This document shows positions 16,474 through 64,000 of a stretch of DNA of 64,000 bases, one piece after another. The DNA lies in contig NC_135667.1 of assembly GCF_964188315.1 (NCBI RefSeq), positions 12,400,001 through 12,464,000 on the forward strand, read 5' to 3'. Under the pieces are notes generated by a model, which was not told where the DNA came from, did not search any database, and worked only from the letters and a program-made list of their open reading frames with translations. How positions within the stretch are numbered: the stretch's first letter is position 1; each line of letters starts with the position of its first letter. Both the position numbers and the translations under genes were made by a program. The DNA comes from Podarcis muralis. Taxonomy: Eukaryota.

Positions 16474-16522
<49 letters not shown>

Positions 16523-16605
16523 CTTTCGTAGATTTTCACGGGTACAGGAATGCAGGTTTTGGTGTCCTCGGGTGTCTTCCCGTGTAAAAGATGGGGTGTC
16601 TAGGC

Positions 16606-16639
16606 GACGTTTCGACGAGGTCTCACTCGTCATCTTCAG
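16606..16639 (-). ncRNA. Minimal hammerhead ribozyme core motif (antisense pLTR, module I)
   Basis: Reverse complement of CTGAAGA-T-GACGAG-tgagac-CTCGTC-GAAA-CGTC. Confidence 0.6.
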
Positions 16640-16700
16640 GCTGGTGTTTTCGGCTTCTTGTTACTTGTTCTTCCAGTAACAAGAAGCCGAAAACACCAGC

Positions 16701-16734
16701 CTGAAGATGACGAGTGAGACCTCGTCGAAACGTC
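16701..16734 (+). ncRNA. Minimal hammerhead ribozyme core motif (module I)
   Basis: CTGAAGA, 6-bp helix II GACGAG/CTCGTC, GAAA, palindromic ACGT and a GTC cleavage triplet; helix I is weak. Confidence 0.6.
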
Positions 16735-16785
16735 GCCTAGACACCCCATCTTTTACACGGGAAGACACCCGAGGACACCAAAACC

Positions 16786-16819
<34 letters not shown>

Positions 16820-16953
16820 CTTTCTGGGACAAATGCAAACAACTAGCCGTCTGGAGAGCTGAAACAGAGACCTCACATAAGACAGACACACACACCAACA
16901 AACTCCACAAACTAGAGAAACGCCAGAAGCCCAGCCACCCTCCACAACAACCC

Positions 16954-19380
16954 ATGAAACAAACAGTACATAACATATCAGACAGGATCCTCACCTCAAC
17001 TGAAACCAAAGTACTCTCCAAAGGTTTCAACTTTGCAGTCGCCCCGAGACGCATCCCCACGGAAAACATCATATGCGGAGTCGAAGCTAGCCTAACCAAA
17101 ATCAACCCAGATGAAGCCAATAAAATCAGACTTGAAGTCACCAACATCCTCTGCTCCAGCAAACCACCCAGAAGCAATTTACACAAAGAAGAACAGAAAG
17201 CACTCACCAACCTGAGGAAAGACAACAACATAATCATTCTCCCAGCAGACAAAGGTAATGCCACTGTTGTGATGAACACATCGGACTACCAAGCAAAACT
17301 ATCAAATCTACTCCAAGACCCTACCTATCAACCTATAAAAACAGATCCCACCACCTATCTGGAAAAAACCACCAAATCCAAAATAAAAGCCTCTCCTATC
17401 AGTGAAGAAATCCAGCTAAGAATCATCCCCAGAGAAAAATCATCCAGATGCCCCAAACTCTACGGCCTCCCCAAGATACACAAAGAAGGAACACCACTCA
17501 GACCAATAGTCAGCTCCATAGGCTCACCTCTACAAAATCTCGCTAAATTTCTCGCCAAGCAACTTCAGCCCTATGCAGAATCCATCTCTTCACACGTTCC
17601 AAACTCCTTCCAGTTCATAGAAACAATAAAGAAGCAAAACCTACATCCCAATGACCTACTTGTGAGCTTCGATGTTGTATCTCTCTTCACACAAGTGCCC
17701 ATTAATGAAGCCTTGACAGCCATTCAAAACAAATACAATCCCCCCGAATACATCTTGGACCTGACCAACCACTGCCTAACCAACACGTACTTCATCCACA
17801 ATGGACAAAGATACAAACAGATAGAAGGAGCACCTATGGGATCACCCCTCTCACCGGTCATCGCAAACCTGTACATGGAACACTTTGAAACCAATGCTTT
17901 AGACAAGTCAGAACACAAACCCAAACTTTGGCTCAGATATGTTGACGACACCTTTGTAATTTGGCCACACGGGAAAGAAAAACTGGACAGCTTCCTCACA
18001 CATCTCAACAGCCTACACCCCAAAATACAATTCACTATGGAAATAGAAGCCAACAACCAACTTCCCTTCCTTGACGTCCTAATCTACAAAAAACCTGATG
18101 GCTCCCTAGGACACACTATCTACCGGAAAAAAACACACACCAACCGCTACTTACATGCACAATCACACCACCACCCTGCACAAATAAACTCCGTAGCCAA
18201 GACTCTCATCTCCAGAACCAAACGCCTGGCTGACAAAGACCACCTGACAACTGAGTTACAGAATCTCTCAAATGTGTTAATTGCCAATGGATACCAGCAA
18301 AACAGGGTTATGAAGCTAATCCAAAAAGAAACACCCCCCAAAAACCAAGACACAGAAGAAAACAATGGCATGGCCCTCCTTCCTTATATCAAGGGCACTA
18401 CAGATAAAATTAGCAAAATCCTCCATAAACACAATATCAAAACAGCCTTTTGCACCAACCAAAAAATAGCCAATATCCTCAGAAACCCCAAGGATAAAAT
18501 CCAGTTGGAAAACCAAGGGGTCTATGAAATACCCTGCAAAGTCTGCCCAGCCACGTACATTGGACAAACAAACAGACGAATAAATGCACGTATTGCAGAA
18601 CACAAGAATGCCGTCAAAAAAGAAGAAAAAACTTCCTCTCTTTTCCAACACATGAAAGAAACAGGACACGAAATTAATTTTGCAGATTCCAAATTGCTCT
18701 TTAACATGGAACATCACCACAAGAGAATAATCATGGAAGCCATCGAGATAGAGAAACACCCTCACAACATGAACAAGCGTGACGACACATCCCGCTTGCC
18801 AGACATCTGGAAATTAGCCCTCCCCACAAAAACTGACACCAGAGCCAGAGGCACACAGAACGCCATCACCAATCAACCACACCAGATCCAAACCCAGTCC
18901 CTCTCCACAGATAAATTACAGACACCATCCAGTAGCCAAACCATGGTGGCACCTCCGGATGCTGCACCCCCCTGCAATCCCTACACAGATCTGGCTGGCA
19001 CAGGCCACAAAACCACAGCTCGCCCCTATACACGAAGCCAAGCCAGAGCACAACTAATTTCAGTACAGCCATCTTCTCAGAAAAACTCTTCACAAAGTTC
19101 AAGAGGTCAAGACACAAAGGCCTTAGCAACTAATCCACACCTAATGACCCACCTAAGTGGTACTCAGGATATCACTCAAGAAATCACTCAAGATATCCCT
19201 CAAGTAATTAAGGAACAAAAGAAGAAAAGGCACACTAGCCTGGGAACTTCCTCTCTGCCCAGAACATTGGAGGCTATACACCACACCTCCTCAACAGTAT
19301 TTATAGGAACTCAAACACTGAGATCCTGCTCTGTTCCAGTAACAAGAAGCCGAAAGCACCAGCCTGAAGATGACGAGTGA
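16954..19380 (+). CDS. Penelope-like RT plus GIY-YIG endonuclease polyprotein (808 aa from first ATG; frame open upstream to at least 16825, so probably 5'-truncated)
   Basis: VHNISDRILT..VLSKGFNF, LYGLPKIHK, PLRPIVS, SFDVVSLFT, GAPMGSPLSP, WLRYVDDTF (RT); GVYEIPC..YIGQT..EH (GIY-YIG); no stops or frameshifts. Confidence 0.96.
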   Translation: MKQTVHNISDRILTSTETKVLSKGFNFAVAPRRIPTENIICGVEASLTKINPDEANKIRLEVTNILCSSKPPRSNLHKEEQKALTNLRKDNNIIILPADKGNATVVMNTSDYQAKLSNLLQDPTYQPIKTDPTTYLEKTTKSKIKASPISEEIQLRIIPREKSSRCPKLYGLPKIHKEGTPLRPIVSSIGSPLQNLAKFLAKQLQPYAESISSHVPNSFQFIETIKKQNLHPNDLLVSFDVVSLFTQVPINEALTAIQNKYNPPEYILDLTNHCLTNTYFIHNGQRYKQIEGAPMGSPLSPVIANLYMEHFETNALDKSEHKPKLWLRYVDDTFVIWPHGKEKLDSFLTHLNSLHPKIQFTMEIEANNQLPFLDVLIYKKPDGSLGHTIYRKKTHTNRYLHAQSHHHPAQINSVAKTLISRTKRLADKDHLTTELQNLSNVLIANGYQQNRVMKLIQKETPPKNQDTEENNGMALLPYIKGTTDKISKILHKHNIKTAFCTNQKIANILRNPKDKIQLENQGVYEIPCKVCPATYIGQTNRRINARIAEHKNAVKKEEKTSSLFQHMKETGHEINFADSKLLFNMEHHHKRIIMEAIEIEKHPHNMNKRDDTSRLPDIWKLALPTKTDTRARGTQNAITNQPHQIQTQSLSTDKLQTPSSSQTMVAPPDAAPPCNPYTDLAGTGHKTTARPYTRSQARAQLISVQPSSQKNSSQSSRGQDTKALATNPHLMTHLSGTQDITQEITQDIPQVIKEQKKKRHTSLGTSSLPRTLEAIHHTSSTVFIGTQTLRSCSVPVTRSRKHQPEDDE

Positions 19381-19397
19381 GACCTCGTCGAAACGTC
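19364..19397 (+). ncRNA. Minimal hammerhead ribozyme core motif (module II), overlapping the ORF stop codon
   Basis: Same 34-nt motif; the ORF ends CCT GAA GAT GAC GAG TGA inside it. Confidence 0.6.
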
Positions 19398-19448
19398 GCC
19401 TAGACACCCCATCTTTTACACGGGAAGACACCCGAGGACACCAAAACC

Positions 19449-19505
<57 letters not shown>

Positions 19506-19588
19506 CTTTCGTAGATTTTCACGGGTACAGGAATGCAGGTTTTGGTGTCCTCGGGTGTCTTCCCGTGTAAAAGATGGGGTGTCTAGGT

Positions 19589-19622
19589 GACGTTTCGACG
19601 AGGTCTCACTCGTCATCTTCAG
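19589..19622 (-). ncRNA. Minimal hammerhead ribozyme core motif (antisense arm, module III)
   Basis: Same 34-nt motif on the minus strand. Confidence 0.6.
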
Positions 19623-20400
19623 GCTGGTGCTTTCGGCTTCTTGTTACTGGAACAGAGCAGGATCTCAGTGTTTGAGTTCCTATAAATACTGTAGAGGAGG
19701 TTTGGTGTATAGCCTCCATTGTTCTGGGCAGAGAGGAAGTTCCCAGGCTAGTGTGCCTTTTCTTCTTTTGTTCCTTAATTACTTGAGGGATATCTTGAGT
19801 GATTTCTTGAGTGATATCCTGGGTACCACTTAGGTGGGTCATTAGGTGTGGATTAGTTGCTAAGGTCTTTGTGTCTTGACCTCTTGACCTTTGTGAAGAG
19901 TTTTTCTGAGAAGATGGCTGTACTGAAATTAGTTGTGCTCTGGCTTGGCTTCGTGTATAGGGGCGAGCTGTGGTTTTGTGGCCTGTGCAATCCCTACACA
20001 GATCTGGCTGGCACAGGCCACAAAACCACAGCTCGCCCCTATACACGAAGCCAAGCCAGAGCACAACTAATTTCAGTACAGCCATCTTCTCAGAAAAACT
20101 CTTCACAAAGGTCAAGAGGTCAAGACACAAAGACCTTAGCAACTAATCCACACCTAATGACCCACCTAAGTGGTACTCAGGATATCACTCAGGATATCAC
20201 TCAGGATATCACTCAAGAAATCACTCAAGATATCCCTCAAGTAATTAAGGAACAAAAGAAGAAAAGGCACACTAGCCTGGGAACTTCCTCTCTGCCCAGA
20301 ACAATGGAGGCTATACACCAAACCTCCTCTACAGTATTTATAGGAACTCAAACACTGAGATCCTGCTCTGTTCCAGTAACAAGAAGCCGAAAGCACCAGC

Positions 20401-20434
20401 CTGAAGATGACGAGTGAGACCTCGTCGAAACGTC
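20401..20434 (+). ncRNA. Minimal hammerhead ribozyme core motif (sense arm, module III)
   Basis: Same 34-nt motif. Confidence 0.6.
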
Positions 20435-20485
20435 GCCTAGACACCCCATCTTTTACACGGGAAGACACCCGAGGACACCAAAACC

Positions 20486-20544
<59 letters not shown>

Positions 20545-22024: not shown

Positions 22025-22954
22025 TTATTCCAAGCCCCTTCTGCGCAGGACTTTTGCTGCTGCTGCGTGGATATCCTTGTTGCGCAGGGTGTAGATGATT
22101 GGGTTGAGAAGAGGGGTGACCACGATGTAAAAGACAGCGAGTTTCTTGTCGCTGTCGGGGTCTGTGACTGACGGGGGTTTCACGTACGCAGCAATGACCG
22201 TGCTGTAAAACAGGGTGACGACCGCCAGGTGGGACACACACGTGGAGAGGGCTTTGCGCAGTCCAGTGGTTGAGTGCATCTTCAGCACAGAGAACAAAAT
22301 GAGCCCGTAGGAAGCCAGAATGACAGCCAGAGAGGTCAGGATCACCACCGCAGACGTCCCAAAAACAATCATCTCTGTGGAATGGATGTCGGCGCATGCC
22401 AGCTTCATCACGATCGGCAGTTCACAGATGAAATGGTTGACGCGGTTGGGGCCGCAATATGGGAGACGGAGGGCACAGATGACGTTTGTTGTAGAGACAA
22501 TGATGCCACCAGCCCAGGAGGCTGAGGCCAGCTGCACCTGGCGCCACCTGCCCATGAGGATGGTATATAGCAGCGGGTGGGAGATAGCCAAGTAGCGGTC
22601 GTAAGCCATGACACCCAGGAGAATGCACTCGGTGCCGCCCATGCACGCAATTGCATGCATCTGGACCACACAGCGTGTGAAAGAGACGGTCCCATTCTGG
22701 CTCAGGAGGTTTGCCAGCATCGGGGGCAAAGTGCAGGTGATGTGGCAGATCTCCAGGCAGGAGAGGTTGGCTAGGAAGAAGTACATGGGCGTGTGGAGCC
22801 TCAAGTCGGTCCACACCAGCGAGATGATCACCAAGTTCCCCATAAGAGTGAGGGAGTAGATGATGAGGATGATCACAAAGAGCAGAATCTGCGTCTTTCG
22901 GTGGTTGGTGAGTCCAACCAAGACAATCTCAGTGATCGACGTGCTGTTTTCCAT
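22025..22954 (-). CDS. Olfactory receptor (class II), intact, 309 aa; paralog of 28410-29345
   Basis: MENSTS start; LHTPMYFFL, MAYDRYLAISHPL, KALSTCVSHL and PLLNPIIYTLRNKD motifs. Confidence 0.97.
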   Translation of the reverse strand: MENSTSITEIVLVGLTNHRKTQILLFVIILIIYSLTLMGNLVIISLVWTDLRLHTPMYFFLANLSCLEICHITCTLPPMLANLLSQNGTVSFTRCVVQMHAIACMGGTECILLGVMAYDRYLAISHPLLYTILMGRWRQVQLASASWAGGIIVSTTNVICALRLPYCGPNRVNHFICELPIVMKLACADIHSTEMIVFGTSAVVILTSLAVILASYGLILFSVLKMHSTTGLRKALSTCVSHLAVVTLFYSTVIAAYVKPPSVTDPDSDKKLAVFYIVVTPLLNPIIYTLRNKDIHAAAAKVLRRRGLE

Positions 22955-28409: not shown

Positions 28410-29345
28410 TTATTCCAAGCCCCTTCTGCGCAGGACTTTCACTGCTGCTGCGTGGATATCCTTGTTGCGCAGGGTGTAGATGATTGGGTTGAGAAGAGGG
28501 GTGACCACGATGTAAAAGACAGCGAGTTTCTTGTCGCTGTCGGGGTCTGTCACTGACGGGGGTTTCACGTATGCGGCAATTATCGTGCTGTAAAACAGGG
28601 TGACGACCGCCAGGTGGGACACACACGTGGAGAGGGCCTTGCGCAGTCCAGTGGTTGAGTGCATCTTCAGCACAGAGAACAAAATGAGCCCGTAGGAAGC
28701 CAGAATGACAGCCAGAGAGGTCAGGATCACCACCGCAGATGTCCCAAAAACAATCATCTCTGTGGAATGGATGTCGGCGCATGCCAGCTTCAACACAATC
28801 GGCAGTTCACAGATGAAATGGTTGACGTGGTTGGGGCCACAGAATGGGAGGCGGAGGCCGCAGATTATGTTTGTTGTAGAGACAATGATGCCACCAGCCC
28901 AGGAGGCTGAGGCCAGCTGCACCTGGCGCCACCTGCCCATGAGGAGGGTATATAGCAGCGGGTGGGAGATAGCCAAGTAGCGGTCGTAAGCCATGACACC
29001 CAGGAGAATGCACTCGGTGCCGCCCAGGCACCCAATGGCATGCATCTGGACCACACAGCAAGTGAAAGAGATGGTCCCATTCTGGCTCATGAGATTTGCC
29101 AGCATCGGGGGCAAAGTGCAGGTGATGTGGCAGATCTCCAGGCAGGAGAGGTTGGCTAGGAAGAAGTACATGGGCGTGTGGAGCCTCAAGTCGATCCACA
29201 CCAGCGAGATGATCACCAAGTTCCCCATAAGAGTGAGGGAGTAGATGATGAGGATGATCACAAAGAGCAGAATCTGCGTCTTTCGGTGGTTGGTGAGTCC
29301 AATCAAGACGATCTCAGTGATCGAGGTGATGTTTTCCTTCCCCAT
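28410..29345 (-). CDS. Olfactory receptor (class II), intact, 311 aa
   Basis: MGKENITS start; same OR motifs; near-identical to 22025-22954. Confidence 0.97.
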   Translation of the reverse strand: MGKENITSITEIVLIGLTNHRKTQILLFVIILIIYSLTLMGNLVIISLVWIDLRLHTPMYFFLANLSCLEICHITCTLPPMLANLMSQNGTISFTCCVVQMHAIGCLGGTECILLGVMAYDRYLAISHPLLYTLLMGRWRQVQLASASWAGGIIVSTTNIICGLRLPFCGPNHVNHFICELPIVLKLACADIHSTEMIVFGTSAVVILTSLAVILASYGLILFSVLKMHSTTGLRKALSTCVSHLAVVTLFYSTIIAAYVKPPSVTDPDSDKKLAVFYIVVTPLLNPIIYTLRNKDIHAAAVKVLRRRGLE

Positions 29346-34077: not shown

Positions 34078-37000
34078 TCAATCCTTTCTTCTTAGTTGCT
34101 CCCTACTATTCAGCTGAGGCCTCATCAGAATAATATAACATTTTGGGGAAAATATACAGCCGAGTAAACCAGCACTGGAGGCTAAGATAGAGAAGATCTC
34201 CACAGCCACCATATATTTTCCTCTTGTGCTCAGATAGGTTGGAACAAAGGACAGCCACACACTGCAAAATACCAGCATGCTGAAGGTGATAAACTTGGCT
34301 TCATTAAAGCTGTCAGGTAACTTCCTGGCTAGGAAGGCTACAGAGAAGCTGACAGTGGCCAGCAAGCCCATAAAGCCCAAGACACAGTAGAACATGGAGA
34401 CTGAGCCTTCATTACATTCCAGAACTATTTCTTTAGTCACAGAGTGCATATCCAAATCTGGGAATGGGGGAGACGTTGCCAGCCACACACAACAAAGAAC
34501 GGCTTGAATCAGGGAGCAGGAAAGAACTATGGAGGTGGCCTGCTGTCTCCCCACCCATTTCCTCATCCTAGAACCTGGTTTGGTGACTCTGAAAGCAAGA
34601 ACCACAATGATCGTCTTGGCCAACACACAAGAAACTGCCACTGAAAAGATGATGCCAAATGCTGTTTGTCGAAGGAGACAGGTCACTTTCTCAGGTCGAC
34701 CGATGAATAGAAGAGCACAAAGGAAAGCAAGAAAGAGGGAGGTGAGGAGAGTGTAGGTGAGGTTCCGGTTGTTGGCTTTGACTATGGGAGTTTCCCGGTG
34801 CTTAATGAAGACCCAAAGCACCAAAGCTGTGATGAAAGAAAGGGAAAGAGCTAAAGCAGTCAAAGTGATCCCCAAAGGTTCTCTATAAGACAAGAAACTG
34901 ATGTCCTTCGGCATGCATGAATCCTGTTCCATGTTTGGGTAATGATCTTGTGGGCACTGAAGGCATTCATCCATGTCTGAAAAATAAATAAATTCAAGCT
35001 TCTATGCATTGCAGCACAATTTTTTTTCTACTAAAATAATCCAAAATAATGACAAAATATTAAATATGAGTTGAAAGGTATAATCCAAAAGATTCTTCTG
35101 CTTCCTTTCCCTATATCCAAGATTCAGCCACATTCAGTGATGATTTGCTTCTTTCTCCCCTCACCCTCCTCAATGCAAGATTTTTGGGTGAAACTCAGTT
35201 AACATGTTATCACTTAACATGAAAATTCTTGAGATTTTACTTTCTCTTTACTTGTATATATGGCAGATTTTCATTGACTAGAAATAACTGATCAATTGAT
35301 CCCTAAAAATAATTGTGGAATATGTTGGTTTTCTGTCAAAAAGAGTAAGTTGATAGGTATAAACTGGTGAGTACTGTGTTCCATAGTCAGAGAAGTGAAA
35401 ATTTCTATATTTAGTTATGCTCCCACGCACACATTATTCCAACCACTTCTTTTAATATATAGTACAAATTTGTAAACATCAACTTGGTGTCTTGTTTATG
35501 ACGAAGTGAAAAAAAAATTTGGGTTAACCTTTCTAAAAAAGCCAGAGTCCTTTTTACTAAGCATCATAGGCAATGACATTCCAAAAAATTTAAGAGAAAT
35601 ATTTTTATATGACACAGCAGCAGCCCAAACATTGATAGCAATGAACTGGAAAGGAGAAAATTCTCCAACTATAATGGATTGGCAAAACAAGTTACAGGAA
35701 TATGTAGAAATGGCGCAAGTGACTAACAGCTTGAGAGGCAACACAAGGCAAGCATTTGCGCAAAAATGGGGAAAATAAAATAGATATTTACGAAATTACA
35801 ACAGTGGTATAAAGCAGTGTTTCCCAACCTTGTGCCTCCAGCTGTTTTTGAACTACAACTCCCATCATCCCTGACTAGCAAGACCAGTGGCAAGGGATGA
35901 TGGGAATTGTAGTCCAAAAACAGCTGGAGGCACAAGGTTGGGAAACACTGGTGTAAAGTCTATAGCAGCATTTGATTGATACTGGATTAATGAAATATAA
36001 ATCAAATAAGTCAAAGGTTAAGTACTGTTCTAAGAATGTATTAGAAAGGAAACAGAGGATAAGCTAATAATGTTAGGTATATTCACAAGCAGAAAGAAAA
36101 TACACATCGGGAAATGATAGGAAGTCCAATTATGTGGTGGTTTTTTTAATCTATGTTAATAAATAGAGAAGAAAACAAGAGATAGTAGAAATATAAATTA
36201 AGTTTATTGTTTGTTAACAAATTCAGTATCTGAAGAAATGTGCATGCACACAAAAGTTCATACCAATAACAAACATAGTTGGTCTCTAAGGTGCTACTGG
36301 AAGGATTTTTTTTATTTTGTTTCAACTATATTTGTTGTATAAGATTGTCAATATAGTATTAAAAAATAATACTAATAAAAGGGAAGGATCAATACACCTC
36401 TAGCTATTTCCAAAAAGTTCTTTTTTGTAACTCTGCAATCTTCAGTTTCCCCTTCAAACAATCATGATATCTTCTTCCGAAAGGGTGATGGTTTTTTCTT
36501 TCCTTTTTGGTGCAAATAATAACCTCAATGACTTGGGACTGCTATGGTTAACTTTATCAGACTTTACCTCATATCAAGAACCACATTTTTCACTGAATTC
36601 TTAACTATTATCTCAACATAATGAAAATGAATGTCTTAATACCTGAGTGAAGGTACATTTGATAGGCTCTAGGCATGATATGCATTACCTGTTTGGTTGG
36701 AAAACTTCCCTTGTGGACACAGAATGCAATCATAGCAGCAAAATGGCTTCCCTTCCTTCTTTGCTTTATAGTAACCCAAAGGGCATTTATCATTACAAAG
36801 AGAAAGGGGCTGCACCTGTCCACAAATGAAAGAAGAGAAGGTTTTCTCTTTTGCAAGCTTGTATATCAACATTGGGAACTATGAATAACTCTGGAAGTAA
36901 TGGATATGGTGCAAAATACGAATGGACCTCACCTGGTTAAAACTGCTGGGCCACACAAAGTCTTCTTCCCAAATCCTCAACACTTCTTCTTGGGGAGCCA

Positions 37001-47110: not shown

Positions 47111-50100
47111 TCAGATTTGTACATTCCTTCTTCTTACTAACTGCCCCTTGCTGTTCAGCTCAGGCTTTAGCAGAATGATGTAGCATTTAGGGGAAAAGAT
47201 GCAGCCCAGTAATCCAGCACTGGAGGCCAAGATGGAGAAGATTTCCACAGCTACCATGTATTTCCCCTTAGTGCTCATATAGGCTGGGACAAAGGTCACC
47301 CAAACACTGCAGAAGACCAACATACTGAATGTGATGAACTTGGCTTCATTGAAACTGTCTGGCAACTTCCTGGCTAGGAAAGCCACAATGAAGCTGACAG
47401 TAGCCTGTAAGCCCAGGAAGCCCAGGACACAGCAGAACATGATGACTGAACCTTCATTGCAGCCCAGAACAATCTCTTCAGCCATTGTGTTCATGTCTAC
47501 ATCTGGGAACGGGGGCGATGTTGCCAGCCACACCACACACTGACTGGCTTGAATCAGGGAGCAAAAAAGAACAACAGAAATGGCCAGTCTATTCCCCACC
47601 CATCTTCTCAGGCTGGACCCTGGCTTGGTGGCCATGAAGGCTAAAAGGACTATGACAGTTTTGGCCAAAATGCAAGAAACTGCCACTGAGAAGATAATGG
47701 CAAAGGCAGTTTGTCGAAGGAGGCACGTCCCTTCCTCGGGTTGGCCAATGAATAGCAGAGAGCAGAGGAAGGAAAGCAGGAGTGAGACAAGGAGGGTGTA
47801 GGTGAGGTTCCTGTTGTTGGCTTTGACTATGGGGGTATTGTTGTGCTTAATGAAGATTCCCAGCACAAAAGCTGTGGTGAAAGAAAAGCAAAGAGCAACA
47901 ATGGCCATACTTATGCCCAAAGGTTCTCCACAAGACAAGAAGATTATATTTTTTGGAATACATAAATCCTGCTCCCGGTTTGCATAATGATCACTTGGAC
48001 ATTGTAAGCAGTCAGCCATGTCTGGGGAGAAAAACAGGCTTTAGTAAAACCAATCTGCATTTTCCTCCTTCTCTTTTCTTTCCCCCACCTTCAATACTCA
48101 TTTGAGGCAGACCTATTTGTCTTCATGATCTGCCTCCTCTGCCACTTATTCATCTCTTTACATTCCTCTGTGCTCTCAATTTAAAATTCGCATCCCTTAC
48201 CTATCAGGTTGGAAATCTTCCCTTCTGGGCATGAAACACAGCCATAGCAGCAAAATGGTTTCCCTTCGATCTTAGTCTTCCTAGAGCCTGGATGGCAGAA
48301 TTCATTACATACAGAAAAGGGCTGTGCCTGTACAGACATGAAATCAGTGAAAGTCTGAGACAATTGTATCCACTATGTCAAAGGGGAATTTTGTCAAAAA
48401 TGCACACATCCTGTTCAGACTGGCTAAGGCCATTCCTTGAATCTTTTACAAATGCATAAGAAATATTTTTGGCAAATAATTACACTTACTCCAGGATTTG
48501 GCCAACATGTTTCCCACTCAACAGAACACTTTGCCACAACCATCCATCATTTTATGAATTTCACAGTTTTGTGTGGGTACATGTTGATTAATCTTTCATT
48601 ATATTTTTAAAATATCAAATGGCATTCAAAACTAGAGGTTAATAGTTTAGTATTAAATGGGTCTAAACACTAAGTAGGTATTCACAGAATGAGAGCCTTA
48701 AGAGTTCAAGATTTTGCAAAGTAATTTTCCTTCCAGTTATTTAGGTATGTATTGACCATACCTGGTTAAATTTGGTAGGCCATACAATATCATTAGAAGA
48801 AATGTTCAATGTTTTCTCTTTGGGAGCAATGACATCTATCTTGCCAAGTTTGACTCGAAGAAAGGAGTGGTTTGGGAATGTTACCCAGTTGATAATATCA
48901 AATCCAGCTGTTAATTCTCCATTTTGATCAAAGGAAACCTTTTCCCCAGCACTGTTGTTAAAGGAGACCCTTTTAAGGAAGTCATGGAGCTAAATTGAAA
49001 CAACAGGAAAGTCAACAAACTATGTTTTGGAGCCCGCTTAAAAGTTCATATTCACTCATAATGGTAGTAAAGCACTCTGATAATGGAGTAAATCTGATAT
49101 ACCCTATATTAAAATCTTCATGATCATCACCCATCAGATTTTAATGAGCTATATCCCCAGGATATCTGCCAAGTCAGAAAAAATCACATGAGGAAAAGAC
49201 CATGCGACATTAATGTTGAGAAAGCTGTCAGCTATCAGGTATGAATTCAGTTTCCCTGTTCTTGAAGGACAAAGTGCAGAGACTATAGGTGCTCCTAGAT
49301 CAAACTGTGTTGCTGGAGAAGCAGGTTTCCTTAGTGGCTGGGAGTGGTTTTCAACAACTTTAATATATGAATAAGGATCTAGTGGTATTTTGCCAAACCT
49401 AAGGTAAACACTGTGCATGTGAACTCTTTTTGGAGTTGGGTTCCAAAATGTTTTTAAAAGTAACAAGTAGAAACATACCATTATTTTCCCAAACATTAGC
49501 AAAAGTATGCCAGCCTGGTGGCCTCTCTTGCACCACTCCATTTTCCTGAACTTATGATGTGCTGGTGGTGGCATGCATGAACTCTCCTGAATCTCTGGGC
49601 TCAAGAAATTACCTGCCATGGTTCTTGATTCAGAAGCTCCCCTCTTCCTCCATCCATCTTTGTTGCATGTTTCAATTTGAATGACTGCATGGATTGCAAA
49701 GCATGTGCTACAGCAAAGACTGCATTGTATACACTGTAGCTGTGGCCAGTCAGGCTCATTTCAAAGACAGATGCAGGAAGTGTCTCCAGCTTCTCATCCC
49801 CCGTGCAGATTTCCCCAGCCTCCCATTGTACCTCACTTTGGGGGAATATACAATTAAAAGCCTTTTCCCAGAAGATCCTAAGAAATACATCTTCTTTTGC
49901 AGAGAAAGGATTTCTCATCTGAATGAATTTCTGGAATCCTAGGACCTCCTTGGCATGAACTGCAATGGATAAAGCACCATGGATGATGTCTATGTCCCAA
50001 GTATTTTGGATGTGAATTGATGTGAATTCCATCTGGGCGGTCATAACCCAGACTTTTGTCTTCCTTGTAATATCCTCTACTTCTAAAACCTGCGGAAGCA

Positions 50101-56949: not shown

Positions 56950-57185
56950 AGGGCTTTTTTTCAGCCAGAACTCACTGGAACTCAGTTCCGGCACCTCTCA
57001 GGTGGGAGCCATTGCCATTCTAGGAGAACAAGGGAGTATACTATACTATACTATACTATACTATACTATACTATACTATACTATACTATACTATACCATA
57101 CCATACCATACCATACCATTCTAGGAGAACAAGGGAGGCCTTCATGTTGAGTTCCGACACCTCTTTTTCTAGAAAAATAGCACTG
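56950..57185. mobile_element. MITE-like repeat containing a (TATAC)n/(CATAC)n microsatellite at 57037-57115
   Basis: agggctttttttcag ... agaaaaatagcactg ends; 22-bp direct repeat around the microsatellite. Confidence 0.5.
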
Positions 57186-61137: not shown

Positions 61138-64000
61138 TGATTGTTGTTTAGTCGTTTAGTCGTGTCCGACTCTTCGTGACCCCATGGACCAGAGCACGCC
61201 AGGCACTCCTGTCTTCCACCGCCTCCCGCAGTTTGGTCAGGCTCATGTTTGTAGCTTCGAGAACACTATCCAACCATCTCATCCTCTGTCGTCCCCTTCT
61301 CCTTGTGCCCTCCATCTTTCCCAACATCAGGGTCTTTTCCAGAGAGTCTTCTCTTCTCATGAGGTGGCCAAAGTATTGGAGCCTCAACTTCACGATCTGT
61401 CCTTCCAGTGAGCACTCAGGTCTGATTTCCTTAAGAATGGATGCGTTTGATCTTCTTGCAGTCCATGGGACTCTCAAGAGTCTCCTCCAGCACCATAATT
61501 CAAAAGCATCAATTCTTTGGCGATCAGCCTTCTTTATGGTCCAGCTCTCACTTCCATACATCACTACTGGGAAAACCATGGCTTTAACTATACGGACCTT
61601 TGTTGGTAAGGTGATGTCTCTACTTTTTAAGATGTTGTCTAGATTTGCCATCGCCTTTCTCCCAAGGAGCATGCGTCTTTTAATTTCGCGACTGCTGTCA
61701 CCATCTGCAGTGATCATGGAGCCCAAGAAAATAAAATCTCTCACTGCCTCCATTTCTTCCCCTTCTATTTGCCAGGAGGTGATGGGACCAGTGGCCATGA
61801 TCTTCGTTTTTTTGATGTTGAGCTTCAGACCATATTTTGCGCTCTCCTCTTTCACCCTCATTAAAAGGTTCTTTAATTCCCCCTCACTTTCTGCCATCAA
61901 GGTTGTGTCATCTGCATATCTGAGGTTGTTGATATTTCTTCCGGCAATCTTAATTCCGGCTTGGGATTCATCCAGCCCAGCCTTTCGCATGATGTATTCT
62001 GCATATAAGTTAAATAAGCAGGGGGACAATATACAGCCTTGTCGTACTCCTTTCCCAATTTTGAACCAATCAGTTGTTCCATATCCAGTTCTAACTGTAG
62101 CTTCTTGTCCCACATAGAGATTTCTCAGGAGACAGATGAGGTGATCAGGCACTCCCATTTCTTTAAGAACTTGCCATAGTTTGCTGTGGTCGACACAGTC
62201 AAAGGCTTTTGCATAGTCAATGAAGCAGAAGTAGATGTCTTTCTGGAACTCTCTAGCTTTCTCCATAATCCAGCGCATGTTTGCAATTTGGTCTCTGGTT
62301 CCTCTGCCTCTTCTAAATCCAGCTTGCACTTCTGGGAGTTCTCGGTCCACATACTGCTTAAGCCTGCCTTGTAGAATTTTAAGCATAACCTTGCTAGCGT
62401 GTGAAATGAGTGCAATTGTGCGGTAGTTGGAGCATTCTTTGGCACTTCCCTTCTTTGGGATTGGGATGTAGACTGATCTTCTCCAATCTTCTGGCCACTG
62501 CTGAGTTTTCCAAATTTGCTGGCATATTGAGTGTAGCACCTTAACAGCATCATCTTTTAAAATTTTAAATAATTCAGCTGGAATATCATCACTTCCACTG
62601 GCCTTGTTATTAGCAATGCTTTCTAAGGCCCATTTGACTTCACTTTCCAGGATATCTGGCTCAAGGTCAGCAACCACACTACCTGGGGTATATGAGACAT
62701 CAATTTCTTTCTGGTATAGTTCCTCTGTGTATTCTTGCCACCTCTTCTTGATGTCTTCTGCTTCTGTTAGGTCCTTTCCACTTTTGTCTTTTATTATGGA
62801 AATCTTTGTACAAAATGTTCCTTTCATATCTCCAATTTTCTTGAACAGATCTCTGGTTTTTCCCATTCTATTGTTTTCCTCTATTTCTTTGCATTGCTCG
62901 TTTAAGAAGGCCTTCTTGTCTCTCCTTGCTATTTTTTGGAAATCTGCATTCAATTTCCTGTATCTTTCACTATCTCCCTCGCATTTTGCTTGCCTTCTCT
63001 CCCCCGCTATTTGTAAGGCCTCGTTGGACAGCCACTTTGCTTTCTTGCATTTCCTTTTCATTGGGATGGTTTTAGTTGCTGCCTCTTGTATAATGTTACG
63101 AGCCTCCATCCATAGTTCTTCAGGCACTCTGTCCACCAAATCTAAATCCTTAAACCTGTTCCTCACTTCCACTGTGTATTCATAAGGAATTTGACTTAGA
63201 TTGTATCTTACCGGCCCAGTGGTTTTTCCTACTTTCTTCAGTTTAAGCTTGAATTTTGCTATAAGAAGCTGATGATCTGAGCCACAGTCAGCTCCAGGTC
63301 TTGTTTTTGCTGACTGTATAGAGCTTCTCCATCTTTGGCTGCAGAGAATATAATCAATCTGATTTCGATGCTGCCCATCTGGTGATGTCCATGTGTAGAG
63401 TCGTCTCTTGTGTTGTTGGAAAAGTGTGTTTGTGATGACCAGCTTGTTCTCTTGACAGAACTCTATTAGCCTTTGCCCTGCTTCGTTTTGAACTCCAAGG
63501 CCAAACTTGCCAGTTGTTCCTTTTATCTCTTGACTCCCTACTTTAGCATTCCAATCCCCTATAATGAGAAGAACATCCTTCTTTGGTGTCACTTCTATAA
63601 GGTCTTGTAAGTCTTCATAGAATTGGTCAATTTCAGTTTCTTCAGCACCAGTAGTTGGTGCATAAACTTGGATTACTGTGATGTTAAAAGGTCTGCCTTG
63701 GATTCGTATCGAGATCATTCTATCATTTTTGAGATTGCATCCCAGTACAGCTTTTGCCACTCTTTTGTTGACTATGAGGGCCACTCCATTTCTTTTACGG
63801 GTTTCTTGTCCACAGTAGTAGATATGATAGTCATCCGAACTGAATTCGCCCATTCCCGTCCATTTTAGTTCACTGATGCCCAAGATGTCAATATTTATTC
63901 TTGCCATCTCATTTTTGACCACATCCAACTTACCCAGGTTCATGGTTCTTACATTCCAGGTTCCTATGCAATATTTTTCTTTACAGCATTGGACTTTCCT
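61138..64000 (-). mobile_element. BovB (RTE-clade) LINE, 5' end outside the window, antisense within V2R-3 intron 3
   Basis: 3' end gactaaacgactaaacaacaa; uninterrupted ORF. Confidence 0.95.
61148..63943 (-). CDS. BovB/RTE ORF: APE endonuclease plus reverse transcriptase, 931 aa in window
   Basis: GISELKW, QVYAPT, GDWNAKVG, NQIDYI, SDH (APE); NYRTIALIS, QAGFR, FIDYAKAFD, GVRQGCILSP, LRYADD (RT). Confidence 0.97.
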   Translation of the reverse strand: MNLGKLDVVKNEMARINIDILGISELKWTGMGEFSSDDYHIYYCGQETRKRNGVALIVNKRVAKAVLGCNLKNDRMISIRIQGRPFNITVIQVYAPTTGAEETEIDQFYEDLQDLIEVTPKKDVLLIIGDWNAKVGSQEIKGTTGKFGLGVQNEAGQRLIEFCQENKLVITNTLFQQHKRRLYTWTSPDGQHRNQIDYILCSQRWRSSIQSAKTRPGADCGSDHQLLIAKFKLKLKKVGKTTGPVRYNLSQIPYEYTVEVRNRFKDLDLVDRVPEELWMEARNIIQEAATKTIPMKRKCKKAKWLSNEALQIAGERRQAKCEGDSERYRKLNADFQKIARRDKKAFLNEQCKEIEENNRMGKTRDLFKKIGDMKGTFCTKISIIKDKSGKDLTEAEDIKKRWQEYTEELYQKEIDVSYTPGSVVADLEPDILESEVKWALESIANNKASGSDDIPAELFKILKDDAVKVLHSICQQIWKTQQWPEDWRRSVYIPIPKKGSAKECSNYRTIALISHASKVMLKILQGRLKQYVDRELPEVQAGFRRGRGTRDQIANMRWIMEKAREFQKDIYFCFIDYAKAFDCVDHSKLWQVLKEMGVPDHLICLLRNLYVGQEATVRTGYGTTDWFKIGKGVRQGCILSPCLFNLYAEYIMRKAGLDESQAGIKIAGRNINNLRYADDTTLMAESEGELKNLLMRVKEESAKYGLKLNIKKTKIMATGPITSWQIEGEEMEAVRDFIFLGSMITADGDSSREIKRRMLLGRKAMANLDNILKSRDITLPTKVRIVKAMVFPVVMYGSESWTIKKADRQRIDAFELWCWRRLLRVPWTARRSNASILKEIRPECSLEGQIVKLRLQYFGHLMRREDSLEKTLMLGKMEGTRRRGRQRMRWLDSVLEATNMSLTKLREAVEDRSAWRALVHGVTKSRTRLND

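Follow-up and report, generated by a model that had tools for sequence, protein, structure and literature searches.

How did three copies of a Penelope-like element (PLE), each with an inverted partner, come to be stacked in a single TA microsatellite? The question arises at positions 16477-20543 of the window, that is, of the whole 64-kb stretch of Podarcis muralis DNA analysed here, where four (TA)n tracts, each 100% pure according to TRF, separate three modules (Table 1). In a motif scan these four were the only long TA tracts in the window, and BLAST found no further copies of the element within it. In every module the inverted copy comes first, beginning with ttgctttc, and the sense copy comes last, ending in aaaacctgca; all six module ends abut (TA)n. 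A preliminary description of the locus had proposed this arrangement, and TRF and alignment confirmed it almost to the base, with arm lengths (147+116, 9+2630 and 485+505 bp for modules I, II and III) that were right within a few bases. Arm borders were set by repeat finding, BLAST and our own alignment. The array occupies intergenic DNA within a cluster of wall-lizard chemoreceptor genes.

Of all retrotransposition pathways, PLE integration is the one least understood, and its sole in vitro system, that of PAc from Anolis, ends at first-strand initiation. The Podarcis locus and its squamate relatives represent natural PLE end products.

Table 1. Positions of TA tracts, module arms, open reading frame and candidate hammerheads in the window.
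Feature	Position	Strand	Basis
(TA)21.5, left-most target tract	16477-16519	.	TRF, 100% pure
Module I inverted arm; tail = first 31 nt (16520-16550)	16520-16665	-	Repeat search, alignment
Candidate minimal hammerhead core, module I inverted arm	16606-16639	-	Motif scan
Module I junction tgttc, 5 nt, stutter-like filler between arms	16666-16670	.	By eye vs module II
Module I sense arm, ending in aaaacctgca (proximal site), without tail	16671-16788	+	Repeat search, BLAST, alignment
Candidate minimal hammerhead core, module I sense arm	16701-16734	+	Motif scan
(TA)14	16789-16816	.	TRF, 100% pure
Module II ttgctttc, 8 nt, only the start of the inverted tail	16817-16824	-	Sequence
Module II sense copy, 2627 nt, 5'-truncated, ending in aaaacctgca	16825-19451	+	BLAST, homologue comparison
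Open 808-aa ORF: DKG motif, RVT_1, GIY-YIG/CCHH endonuclease	16954-19380	+	ORF list, Pfam, alignment
Candidate minimal hammerhead core, module II	19364-19397	+	Motif scan
(TA)26	19452-19503	.	TRF, 100% pure
Module III inverted arm; tail = first 31 nt (19504-19534)	19504-19989	-	Repeat search, BLAST, alignment
Candidate minimal hammerhead core, module III inverted arm	19589-19622	-	Motif scan
Module III sense arm, ending in aaaacctgca	19987-20488	+	TRF, repeat search, BLAST, alignment
Candidate minimal hammerhead core, module III sense arm	20401-20434	+	Motif scan
(TA)27.5, right-most tract	20489-20543	.	TRF, 100% pure

The arms of module I are complementary at 116 of 116 positions (repeat search and alignment), the inverted arm beyond its first 31 nt being the complement of the sense arm. 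In module III the arms overlap by 3 nt (tgc) at the junction. Its sense arm extends 25 nt further 5' than its inverted arm, and two extra units of a 12-nt coding repeat at 20175-20239 add 24 nt to it; the inverted arm carries two private substitutions. The short inverted piece of module II is identical to the first 8 nt of inverted arms I and III, a match with a chance probability of about 1.5e-5, and the 98-100% identity of arms over 116-2600 nt cannot be due to chance. A 31-nt tail is present on inverted arms I and III, with its first 8 nt preceding module II, and is absent from all three sense ends. In every module the sense arm reaches further 5' than the inverted arm. BLAST found no head-to-tail direct repeat, and so no direct pseudo-LTRs (pLTRs), inside any module; direct repeats occur only between modules, spanning the TA tracts. 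A reading of module II as a complete unit, whose 5' end (tgggac) would follow in frame directly after the distal site gaaagcaa, was rejected because a further 120-140 residues precede the conserved HPxLW motif in full-length homologues and a viper copy extends 21 nt further 5'. By comparison with the full-length homologues, module II lacks about 140 N-terminal codons.

Judged by its domains, motifs and identity, the element is a Poseidon-type PLE of the Penelope/Poseidon clade, which bears out its earlier assignment to the Penelope-like elements. The frame of module II is open back to 16825, and its ORF matches RVT_1 in Pfam (E = 6e-16), contains ADKGNATVVM in alignment with ADKGNATVIM of PAc, and shares 47% amino acid identity with PAc over 620 aa. 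The GIY-YIG Pfam score (19.7 bits) is just below the cut-off of 22.6; the endonuclease (EN) pattern GVYEIPCKVC...YIGQT...H...H matches that of PAc residue for residue in alignment. A regular-expression search of 851 codons found no CX2-5CxxC linker before the EN, the feature that separates Neptune/Nematis from the Penelope/Poseidon clade. Identity to a Podarcis muralis protein is 96%, and divergence of 1-1.5% together with open ORFs supports the earlier view that the family is young.

The element also contains a candidate minimal hammerhead, CUGAAGA-U-(6-bp helix II)-GAAACGUC, with an ATG at core position A9. A motif scan of the window found five exact CUGAAGA...GAAACGUC cores with the bulged U and 6-bp helix II, and these agree with the published description of minimal hammerheads (min-HHR) and with the layout of PAc, whose consensus has its ATG at the same core position A9 (PMC4209133). 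The core in module II contains both the stop codon of the ORF and the ATG of the next-unit ORF. An Rfam scan gave no hammerhead match at E <= 1; its only matches were spurious ones to miRNA hairpins, caused by the palindromes.

Counted from the hammerhead-embedded ATG, the tail occupies +85 to +114. The tail of PAc spans 85-119, between two reverse-transcription start sites mapped in vitro, and in vitro the PAc protein, a predicted dimer, cuts both target strands and extends them, with no difference between top and bottom strand in start-site use (PMC11167929). The end points of the Podarcis arms match these two start sites. The motif ttgctttc, previously taken for the end of the element, is instead a start site that lies inside the ORF, 114 nt from its beginning. 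The centroid structure of the start-site region has a CACGGG/CCCGUG stem around an AC-rich loop, although the region folds no better than shuffled sequence (z = -0.85).

Diagnostic variants bear on the question of whether the modules have a common source. All six that had been reported are present in our alignment: gaaaAcacc (A for G) is private to module I and found in both its arms, and five positions are common to both arms of module III and absent from module II. At a second Podarcis locus (L001), a single difference in 2312 nt separates the two arms, against 26-28 differences between either arm and module II; the arms of one viper module (B) are 99.86% identical, and the neighbouring viper module (A) is only 66-80% similar. 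Since module-private variants are common to both arms, these data support the proposal that each module was copied from its own template, which served for both of its arms and was not shared with the other two modules. The likeness of arms could alternatively come from gene conversion between palindrome arms or from assembly polishing. A parsing of the array into tail-to-tail pairs across each TA tract was rejected because variants are not common to neighbours across a tract.

Six related loci beyond the window (L001-L006), taken from protein hits, were compared by means of a composite ruler (module II sense copy plus the 31-nt tail) that served only as BLAST query. All but one of their scorable ends abut (TA)n and almost all of their long TA tracts adjoin PLE ends, which, with the six ends in the window, supports the reported association: the family sits in (TA)n. 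Stacking also occurs at L002 and L005; related copies are stacked in TA tracts of a viper (Vipera) and an agamid (Phrynocephalus). The idea that the family builds arrays is strengthened to this extent. That it re-targets its own TA tails was an inference and overstated the case, since the array is accounted for just as well if a preferred target was hit repeatedly or if long TA target-site duplications were made.

The tail-bearing arm was the shorter arm in all seven one-tail modules (I, II and III of the window, L001, viper A and B, and a mini-module at L005) and the longer in none (two-sided binomial ~0.016, for a small and non-random sample taken from protein hits). Both ends of L003 carry a tail, so a start at the distal site is also available to the longer arm. 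The relatives further include simple truncated copies, two-tail copies and twin-priming-like inversions, of which the L005 main copy and L006 are true examples. The inverted-arm layout is thus frequent but not universal in the family, and the common fold-back plan claimed for the three modules, though found in each of them, is neither new nor shared by all relatives. A literature search for a squamate TA-specific Penelope gave nothing specific.

We consider it probable that the array arose when a young Poseidon-type PLE was retrotransposed into the same TA microsatellite three separate times, each time by a two-primer route. The GIY-YIG endonuclease would nick both (TA)n strands. From one 3'-OH, reverse transcription would start at the proximal internal site, at +84 counted from the ATG in the hammerhead, and give the cDNA that becomes the sense copy and ends at a variable 5'-truncation point. 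The 3'-OH of the other strand would prime at the distal site (+114); in the simplest case it would use the same RNA and follow the first polymerase. The arm so begun would therefore carry the 31-nt tail. After copying 8 to about 2300 nt, the second polymerase would jump to the first cDNA, joining its 3' end at a microhomology of 0-3 nt, and copy it back. The two arms would then form an inverted repeat, head to head, in which the shorter arm has the tail and a 'loop' of 5-25 nt reads in sense orientation. As TA would be left on both sides after each insertion, the tract would remain a target and modules could accumulate. We infer the order of events, and the use of two primers on the same RNA, from the end products only. 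A stricter version is put forward tentatively and with some doubt: in an ordered, PLE-specific pathway, the two TA strands would prime on a single RNA at fixed sites separated by 30 nt, and the polymerase that trails would always jump onto the leading cDNA, which would account for the lack of modules whose longer arm bears the tail; each event might also turn most of the TA tract into a long target-site duplication, multiplying landing sites and building arrays.

The same three insertions might instead have folded back by self-priming, the first cDNA snapping back and the endonuclease resolving the hairpin near the proximal site, so that one arm only would retain the tail. Palindromes at inverted junctions led Arkhipova et al. 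2013 to propose self-priming, and Craig et al. 2021 ascribe the tail to EN-mediated resolution (PMC8557442). The near-equal arms and tiny loops of modules I, III and L001 are hairpin-like, and ATT, the cut motif preferred by PAc, lies exactly at the Podarcis proximal site (gcATTcc). It is absent from the viper proximal site, however, and self-priming would not be expected to produce the 8-nt tail of module II, the L005 mini-module in which the tail stands alone before the switch, or the arms of viper A and B, unequal by 460-1100 nt; we regard this route as unlikely. An origin of the whole array in one complex event or in later rearrangement of the DNA (serial template jumps, unequal crossing-over, ectopic recombination between TA tracts, or duplication) seems very improbable. 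Template jumps are common for PLE reverse transcriptases and long pure TA tracts are recombinogenic, but the modules are unlike in arm lengths, junctions and diagnostic bases, their variants are common within modules and not between neighbours across a TA tract, and the stacked viper modules are subfamilies only 66-80% alike. Duplication would be expected to give matching modules.

There is very little likelihood that the array is an artefact in which different genomic copies were falsely joined through TA tracts or arms were homogenised by polishing, even though Craig et al. 2021 caution that tandem and inverted PLE structures trouble assemblies (PMC8557442). The block is just 4 kb, well inside single long reads, all junctions are clean and typical of the element, and independent viper and agamid assemblies have the same stacked layout. 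Twin priming was rejected as the origin of the three modules. In L1 twin priming the inverted piece derives from RNA upstream of the sense piece; as reportedly described by Ostertag & Kazazian 2001, the RNA is the template for a second cDNA, primed by the second target strand, and joining of the two cDNAs gives an inverted segment. At the Podarcis locus, in contrast, the sense arm is duplicated by an inverted arm that begins at the 3' start site.

The literature already describes inverted 5'-truncated arms, tails on one side and AT/(TA)n targeting, and in the textbook PLE layout a 5'-truncated inverted copy stands head to head and one end carries a tail of 30-40 bp (PMC3846280, PMC8557442); the locus is therefore a clean specimen of known biology rather than a new kind of element. 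What is new is the stacking of related copies in TA tracts of viper and agamid, the shorter length of the tail-bearing arm in all seven one-tail modules, and (TA)n targeting without a Neptune-type Cys linker. The shared arm variants point to one template per event and, with tail polarity and linker-free targeting, constrain models of second-strand synthesis and target choice. For annotation, long pure TA tracts of squamates are often PLE landing pads with stacked palindromes.

Among known systems, PAc (Poseidon_Ac) of Anolis carolinensis (Frangieh et al. 2024, PMC11167929; Arkhipova 2006) resembles the Podarcis element in its domain order, in a minimal hammerhead (a candidate here) with the ORF ATG at the start of stem II, in two insertion end points ~30 nt apart, ~85 and ~115 nt into the ORF, and in AT-rich targets. 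Both target strands are used by PAc and, under the mechanism proposed here, would be used by the Podarcis element. The two differ in that only the Podarcis element has a long repeat-bearing C-terminal extension, and in that the Podarcis family ends in long pure (TA)n, whereas one PAc copy (L007) is a pLTR-ORF-pLTR partial tandem in non-microsatellite DNA, with the direct pLTR that the Podarcis locus lacks. Direct pLTRs from partial tandem copies are frequent in PLEs but not obligatory.

Penelope of D. virilis and Pen2a of Adineta vaga (PMC3846280) share with the Podarcis modules an inverted 5'-truncated copy head to head with a sense copy, a 31-bp tail on only one inverted repeat, and junctions formed by short palindromes or microhomologies. 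Their copies lie in unique DNA with target-site duplications of 8-10 bp, and direct pLTRs are present, whereas the Podarcis locus has TA flanks, in which no such duplication can be read, and three stacked events. Naiad and Neptune PLEs (Craig et al. 2021, PMC8557442) likewise show a strong (TA)n preference, complex tandem and inverted insertions and a tail. Naiads, however, have an N-terminal endonuclease and no canonical hammerheads, in contrast to the C-terminal EN and candidate hammerhead of the Podarcis element. The TA bias of Naiads has been tentatively ascribed to a CX2-5CxxC linker; the Podarcis element sits in (TA)n without it.

Four perfectly pure TA tracts (21.5, 14, 26 and 27.5 repeats) lie within 16477-20543, and these are the only TA runs of more than 7 repeats in the window. 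Between them sit three blocks of a single repeat family, modules I, II and III, each with an inverted and a sense part of a Penelope-like element (PLE). Every sense arm in the array ended at aaaacctgca (the proximal site), and every inverted part began with (t)ttgctttc (the distal site). Inverted arms ran 31 nt past the sense-arm stop point in every case; numbered from the ATG inside the hammerhead, +84 is the last position of the sense arms and +114 the first of the inverted arms. No further copy of the family was found in the 64-kb window beyond the three modules. The stack occupies intergenic DNA within a chemoreceptor cluster, and a long ORF near the window's end is apparently an intact LINE ORF2.

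Features of the PLE array and its surroundings (window coordinates)
Feature	Position	Strand
77-bp unit x1.9, unrelated to PLE	1160-1307	
Olfactory receptor ORFs (7tm_4), three, intact, ~310-350 aa	12651-13700, 22028-22954, 28413-29345	-
Module I inverted arm	16520-16665	-
Module I junction between inverted and sense arms, five bases		
Module I sense arm	16671-16788	+
Module II start, eight bases (ttgctttc)	16817-16824	-
Module II sense sequence, 2627 nt, directly after ttgctttc	16825-19451	+
Module III inverted arm	19504-19989	-
Module III sense arm (3-nt tgc common to both arms at junction)	19987-20488	+
V2R-type 7tm_3 exons, two	34081-34974, 47114-48019	-
(TATAC)16 microsatellite, unrelated to PLE	57037-57116	
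931-aa open ORF, APE endonuclease and RT domain	61151-63943	-

Module II contains an 808-codon open ORF with RVT_1 and GIY-YIG domains. Its identity is 96% to a protein from Podarcis muralis and 47%, across 620 residues, to PAc, the Poseidon element of Anolis carolinensis. The DKG motif and CCHH endonuclease core are present and the CX2-5CxxC linker is absent from this ORF, a combination that fits the Penelope/Poseidon clade and not Neptune. As judged by homology, module II is 5'-truncated and incomplete, with the first ~140 residues (the N-terminal helical domain) missing. The core CUGAAGA-U-GACGAG...CUCGUC-GAAACGUC was present in each arm; it has the bulged base and 6-bp helix II of PLE minimal hammerheads and is a putative ribozyme, and the ORF ATG has the same position in it as in the PAc consensus (PMC4209133). 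Rfam did not call the element core as a hammerhead. The cores at 16701-16734 (module I sense arm) and 19364-19397 (module II) lie on the same strand, 2663 nt apart, so a read-through transcript would be bracketed by two ribozymes, which come from separate insertion events and not from a tandem unit. Stretches of this PLE's ORF also occur inside the host gene models TSNAX (Podarcis, P0136), P2RY1 isoform X3 (Ahaetulla, P0123) and ACOT12 (Pseudonaja, P0147), probably through exonisation or annotation artefact.

Six related squamate loci (L001-L006) were obtained via protein hits. L001, from Podarcis, runs from (TA)24 to (TA)22.5; in between come, in this order, a 2341-nt inverted arm that bears the tail, a loop of 8 nt and a 2320-nt sense arm that stops at the proximal site. 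Each arm differs from module II at 26-28 positions, but the two differ from one another at just 1 of 2312. In the viper Vipera latastei (L002), two stacked modules in opposite orientations lie among four TA tracts of ~40 repeats each; their subfamilies are just 66-80% alike, and the arms of module B are 99.86% identical. The Phrynocephalus locus (L005) comprises a main copy and a stacked mini-module (tail, filler and 53-nt sense end) between (TA)71 and (TA)54. Judged by these six loci, this PLE lineage habitually targets TA tracts and stacks its copies across Squamata. The fold-back grammar set out in the preliminary description was common among them but not exclusive: L003 has a tail at each of its two ends, L004 is a plain 5'-truncated copy within TA, and L006 and the L005 main copy have inversions resembling twin priming.

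Flanking TA repeats number 50-71 in Phrynocephalus forsythii, ~40 in the viper and 14-27 in Podarcis, and tract length looks species-typical; either long TA target-site duplications or subsequent microsatellite dynamics may explain why flanking tracts are similar in length. Upstream of the twin-priming-like copy in P. forsythii, (TA)50 is continuous with (GA)13 (L005 4718-4845). In the viper, a 306-bp non-PLE insert (L002 3951-4256) lies between two (TA)~43 tracts, adjoining the stacked modules. On visual inspection it resembles a tRNA-derived SINE, in which case other retroposons also insert into these TA tracts.

All arms were aligned, each in sense orientation, and the diagnostic variants claimed earlier for modules I and III were real. 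Both arms of module I have A where all other copies have G, and both arms of module III have five bases absent in module II; the module III inverted arm has two additional private substitutions and its sense arm two additional copies of a 12-nt coding repeat. Since each variant is present twice, in opposite orientation, base-calling errors are unlikely to have produced them. Variants were not common to neighbours on either side of a TA tract, so the original division into three modules is the parsimonious parse. That the modules differ in arm length, in junction and in variants favours three separate events over a duplication or one serial-jump event, both of which are unlikely; the two distinct subfamilies stacked in the viper support the same reading. 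Of the 12 differences that separate module II from L001 in the RT/EN part, 8 are synonymous, which suggests an origin of the variants in active source lineages rather than through post-insertion decay. Between-arm differences (from 0/116 via 2/455 to 1/2312 in L001), together with open ORFs, indicate a young family. The 12-nt repeat, ACTCAGGATATC, lies in the C-terminal extension (19162-19208, 19782-19818 and 20175-20239) and differs in copy number between arms (3.9, 3.1 and 5.4), even within module III; this could be due to RT slippage or later expansion. One terminal-region site has three states in young copies, acca-C/A/T-acc in module II (19296), module III (19717 and 20320) and L001 (alignment column 334).

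The tail-bearing arm was the shorter arm in 7/7 single-tail modules (I, II and III, L001, viper A and B, and the L005 mini-module); the reverse polarity, a tail on the longer arm, occurred in 0/7 (two-sided binomial about 0.016, in a small, non-random sample). This regularity may be new. Where arms are near-equal, the tail-less arm extends 5-25 nt further 5', leaving a small loop in sense orientation. Junctions have microhomology of 2-3 nt, or stutter. Snap-back and resolution would account for the near-equal arms, but this explanation fails for module II, with only 8 nt of tail, for the L005 mini-module and for the strongly unequal viper arms. Polarity and shared arm variants, read from end products, point to an ordered process. 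One nicked strand would prime at the proximal site and run ahead; the other would prime at the distal site, in the simplest case on the same RNA in the wake of the first enzyme, and the trailing enzyme would finish with a jump to the first cDNA's 3' end.

Earlier work on PLEs already covers the architecture, the tail and the preference for AT/TA. The typical Penelope structure has an inverted 5'-truncated copy placed head to head, with one of the inverted repeats bearing a 31-bp tail (PMC3846280; also PMC8557442), and a (TA)n bias is reported for some PLE clades (PMC8557442). The preliminary description had thus correctly read this signature from raw sequence, but its "grammar" is not new. For PAc, two internal reverse-transcription start sites have been mapped (Frangieh et al., PMC11167929), the stretch that separates them is the genomic "tail" (nt 85-119), and at AT-rich targets the protein was shown to nick and extend both strands (PMC11167929). 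The only PAc copy retrieved, L007, differs in being a classic partial tandem that lies outside microsatellite DNA and has no inverted arm; its period is 2638 bp (L007 3614-6756) and it ends at +118, tail included. The array is real, an example of PLE insertion fit for a textbook, in which a single microsatellite took three independent events. To the known picture it makes modest additions: the polarity rule, pending a proper census, stacking across species, and TA specificity in a Poseidon-type family without the linker.
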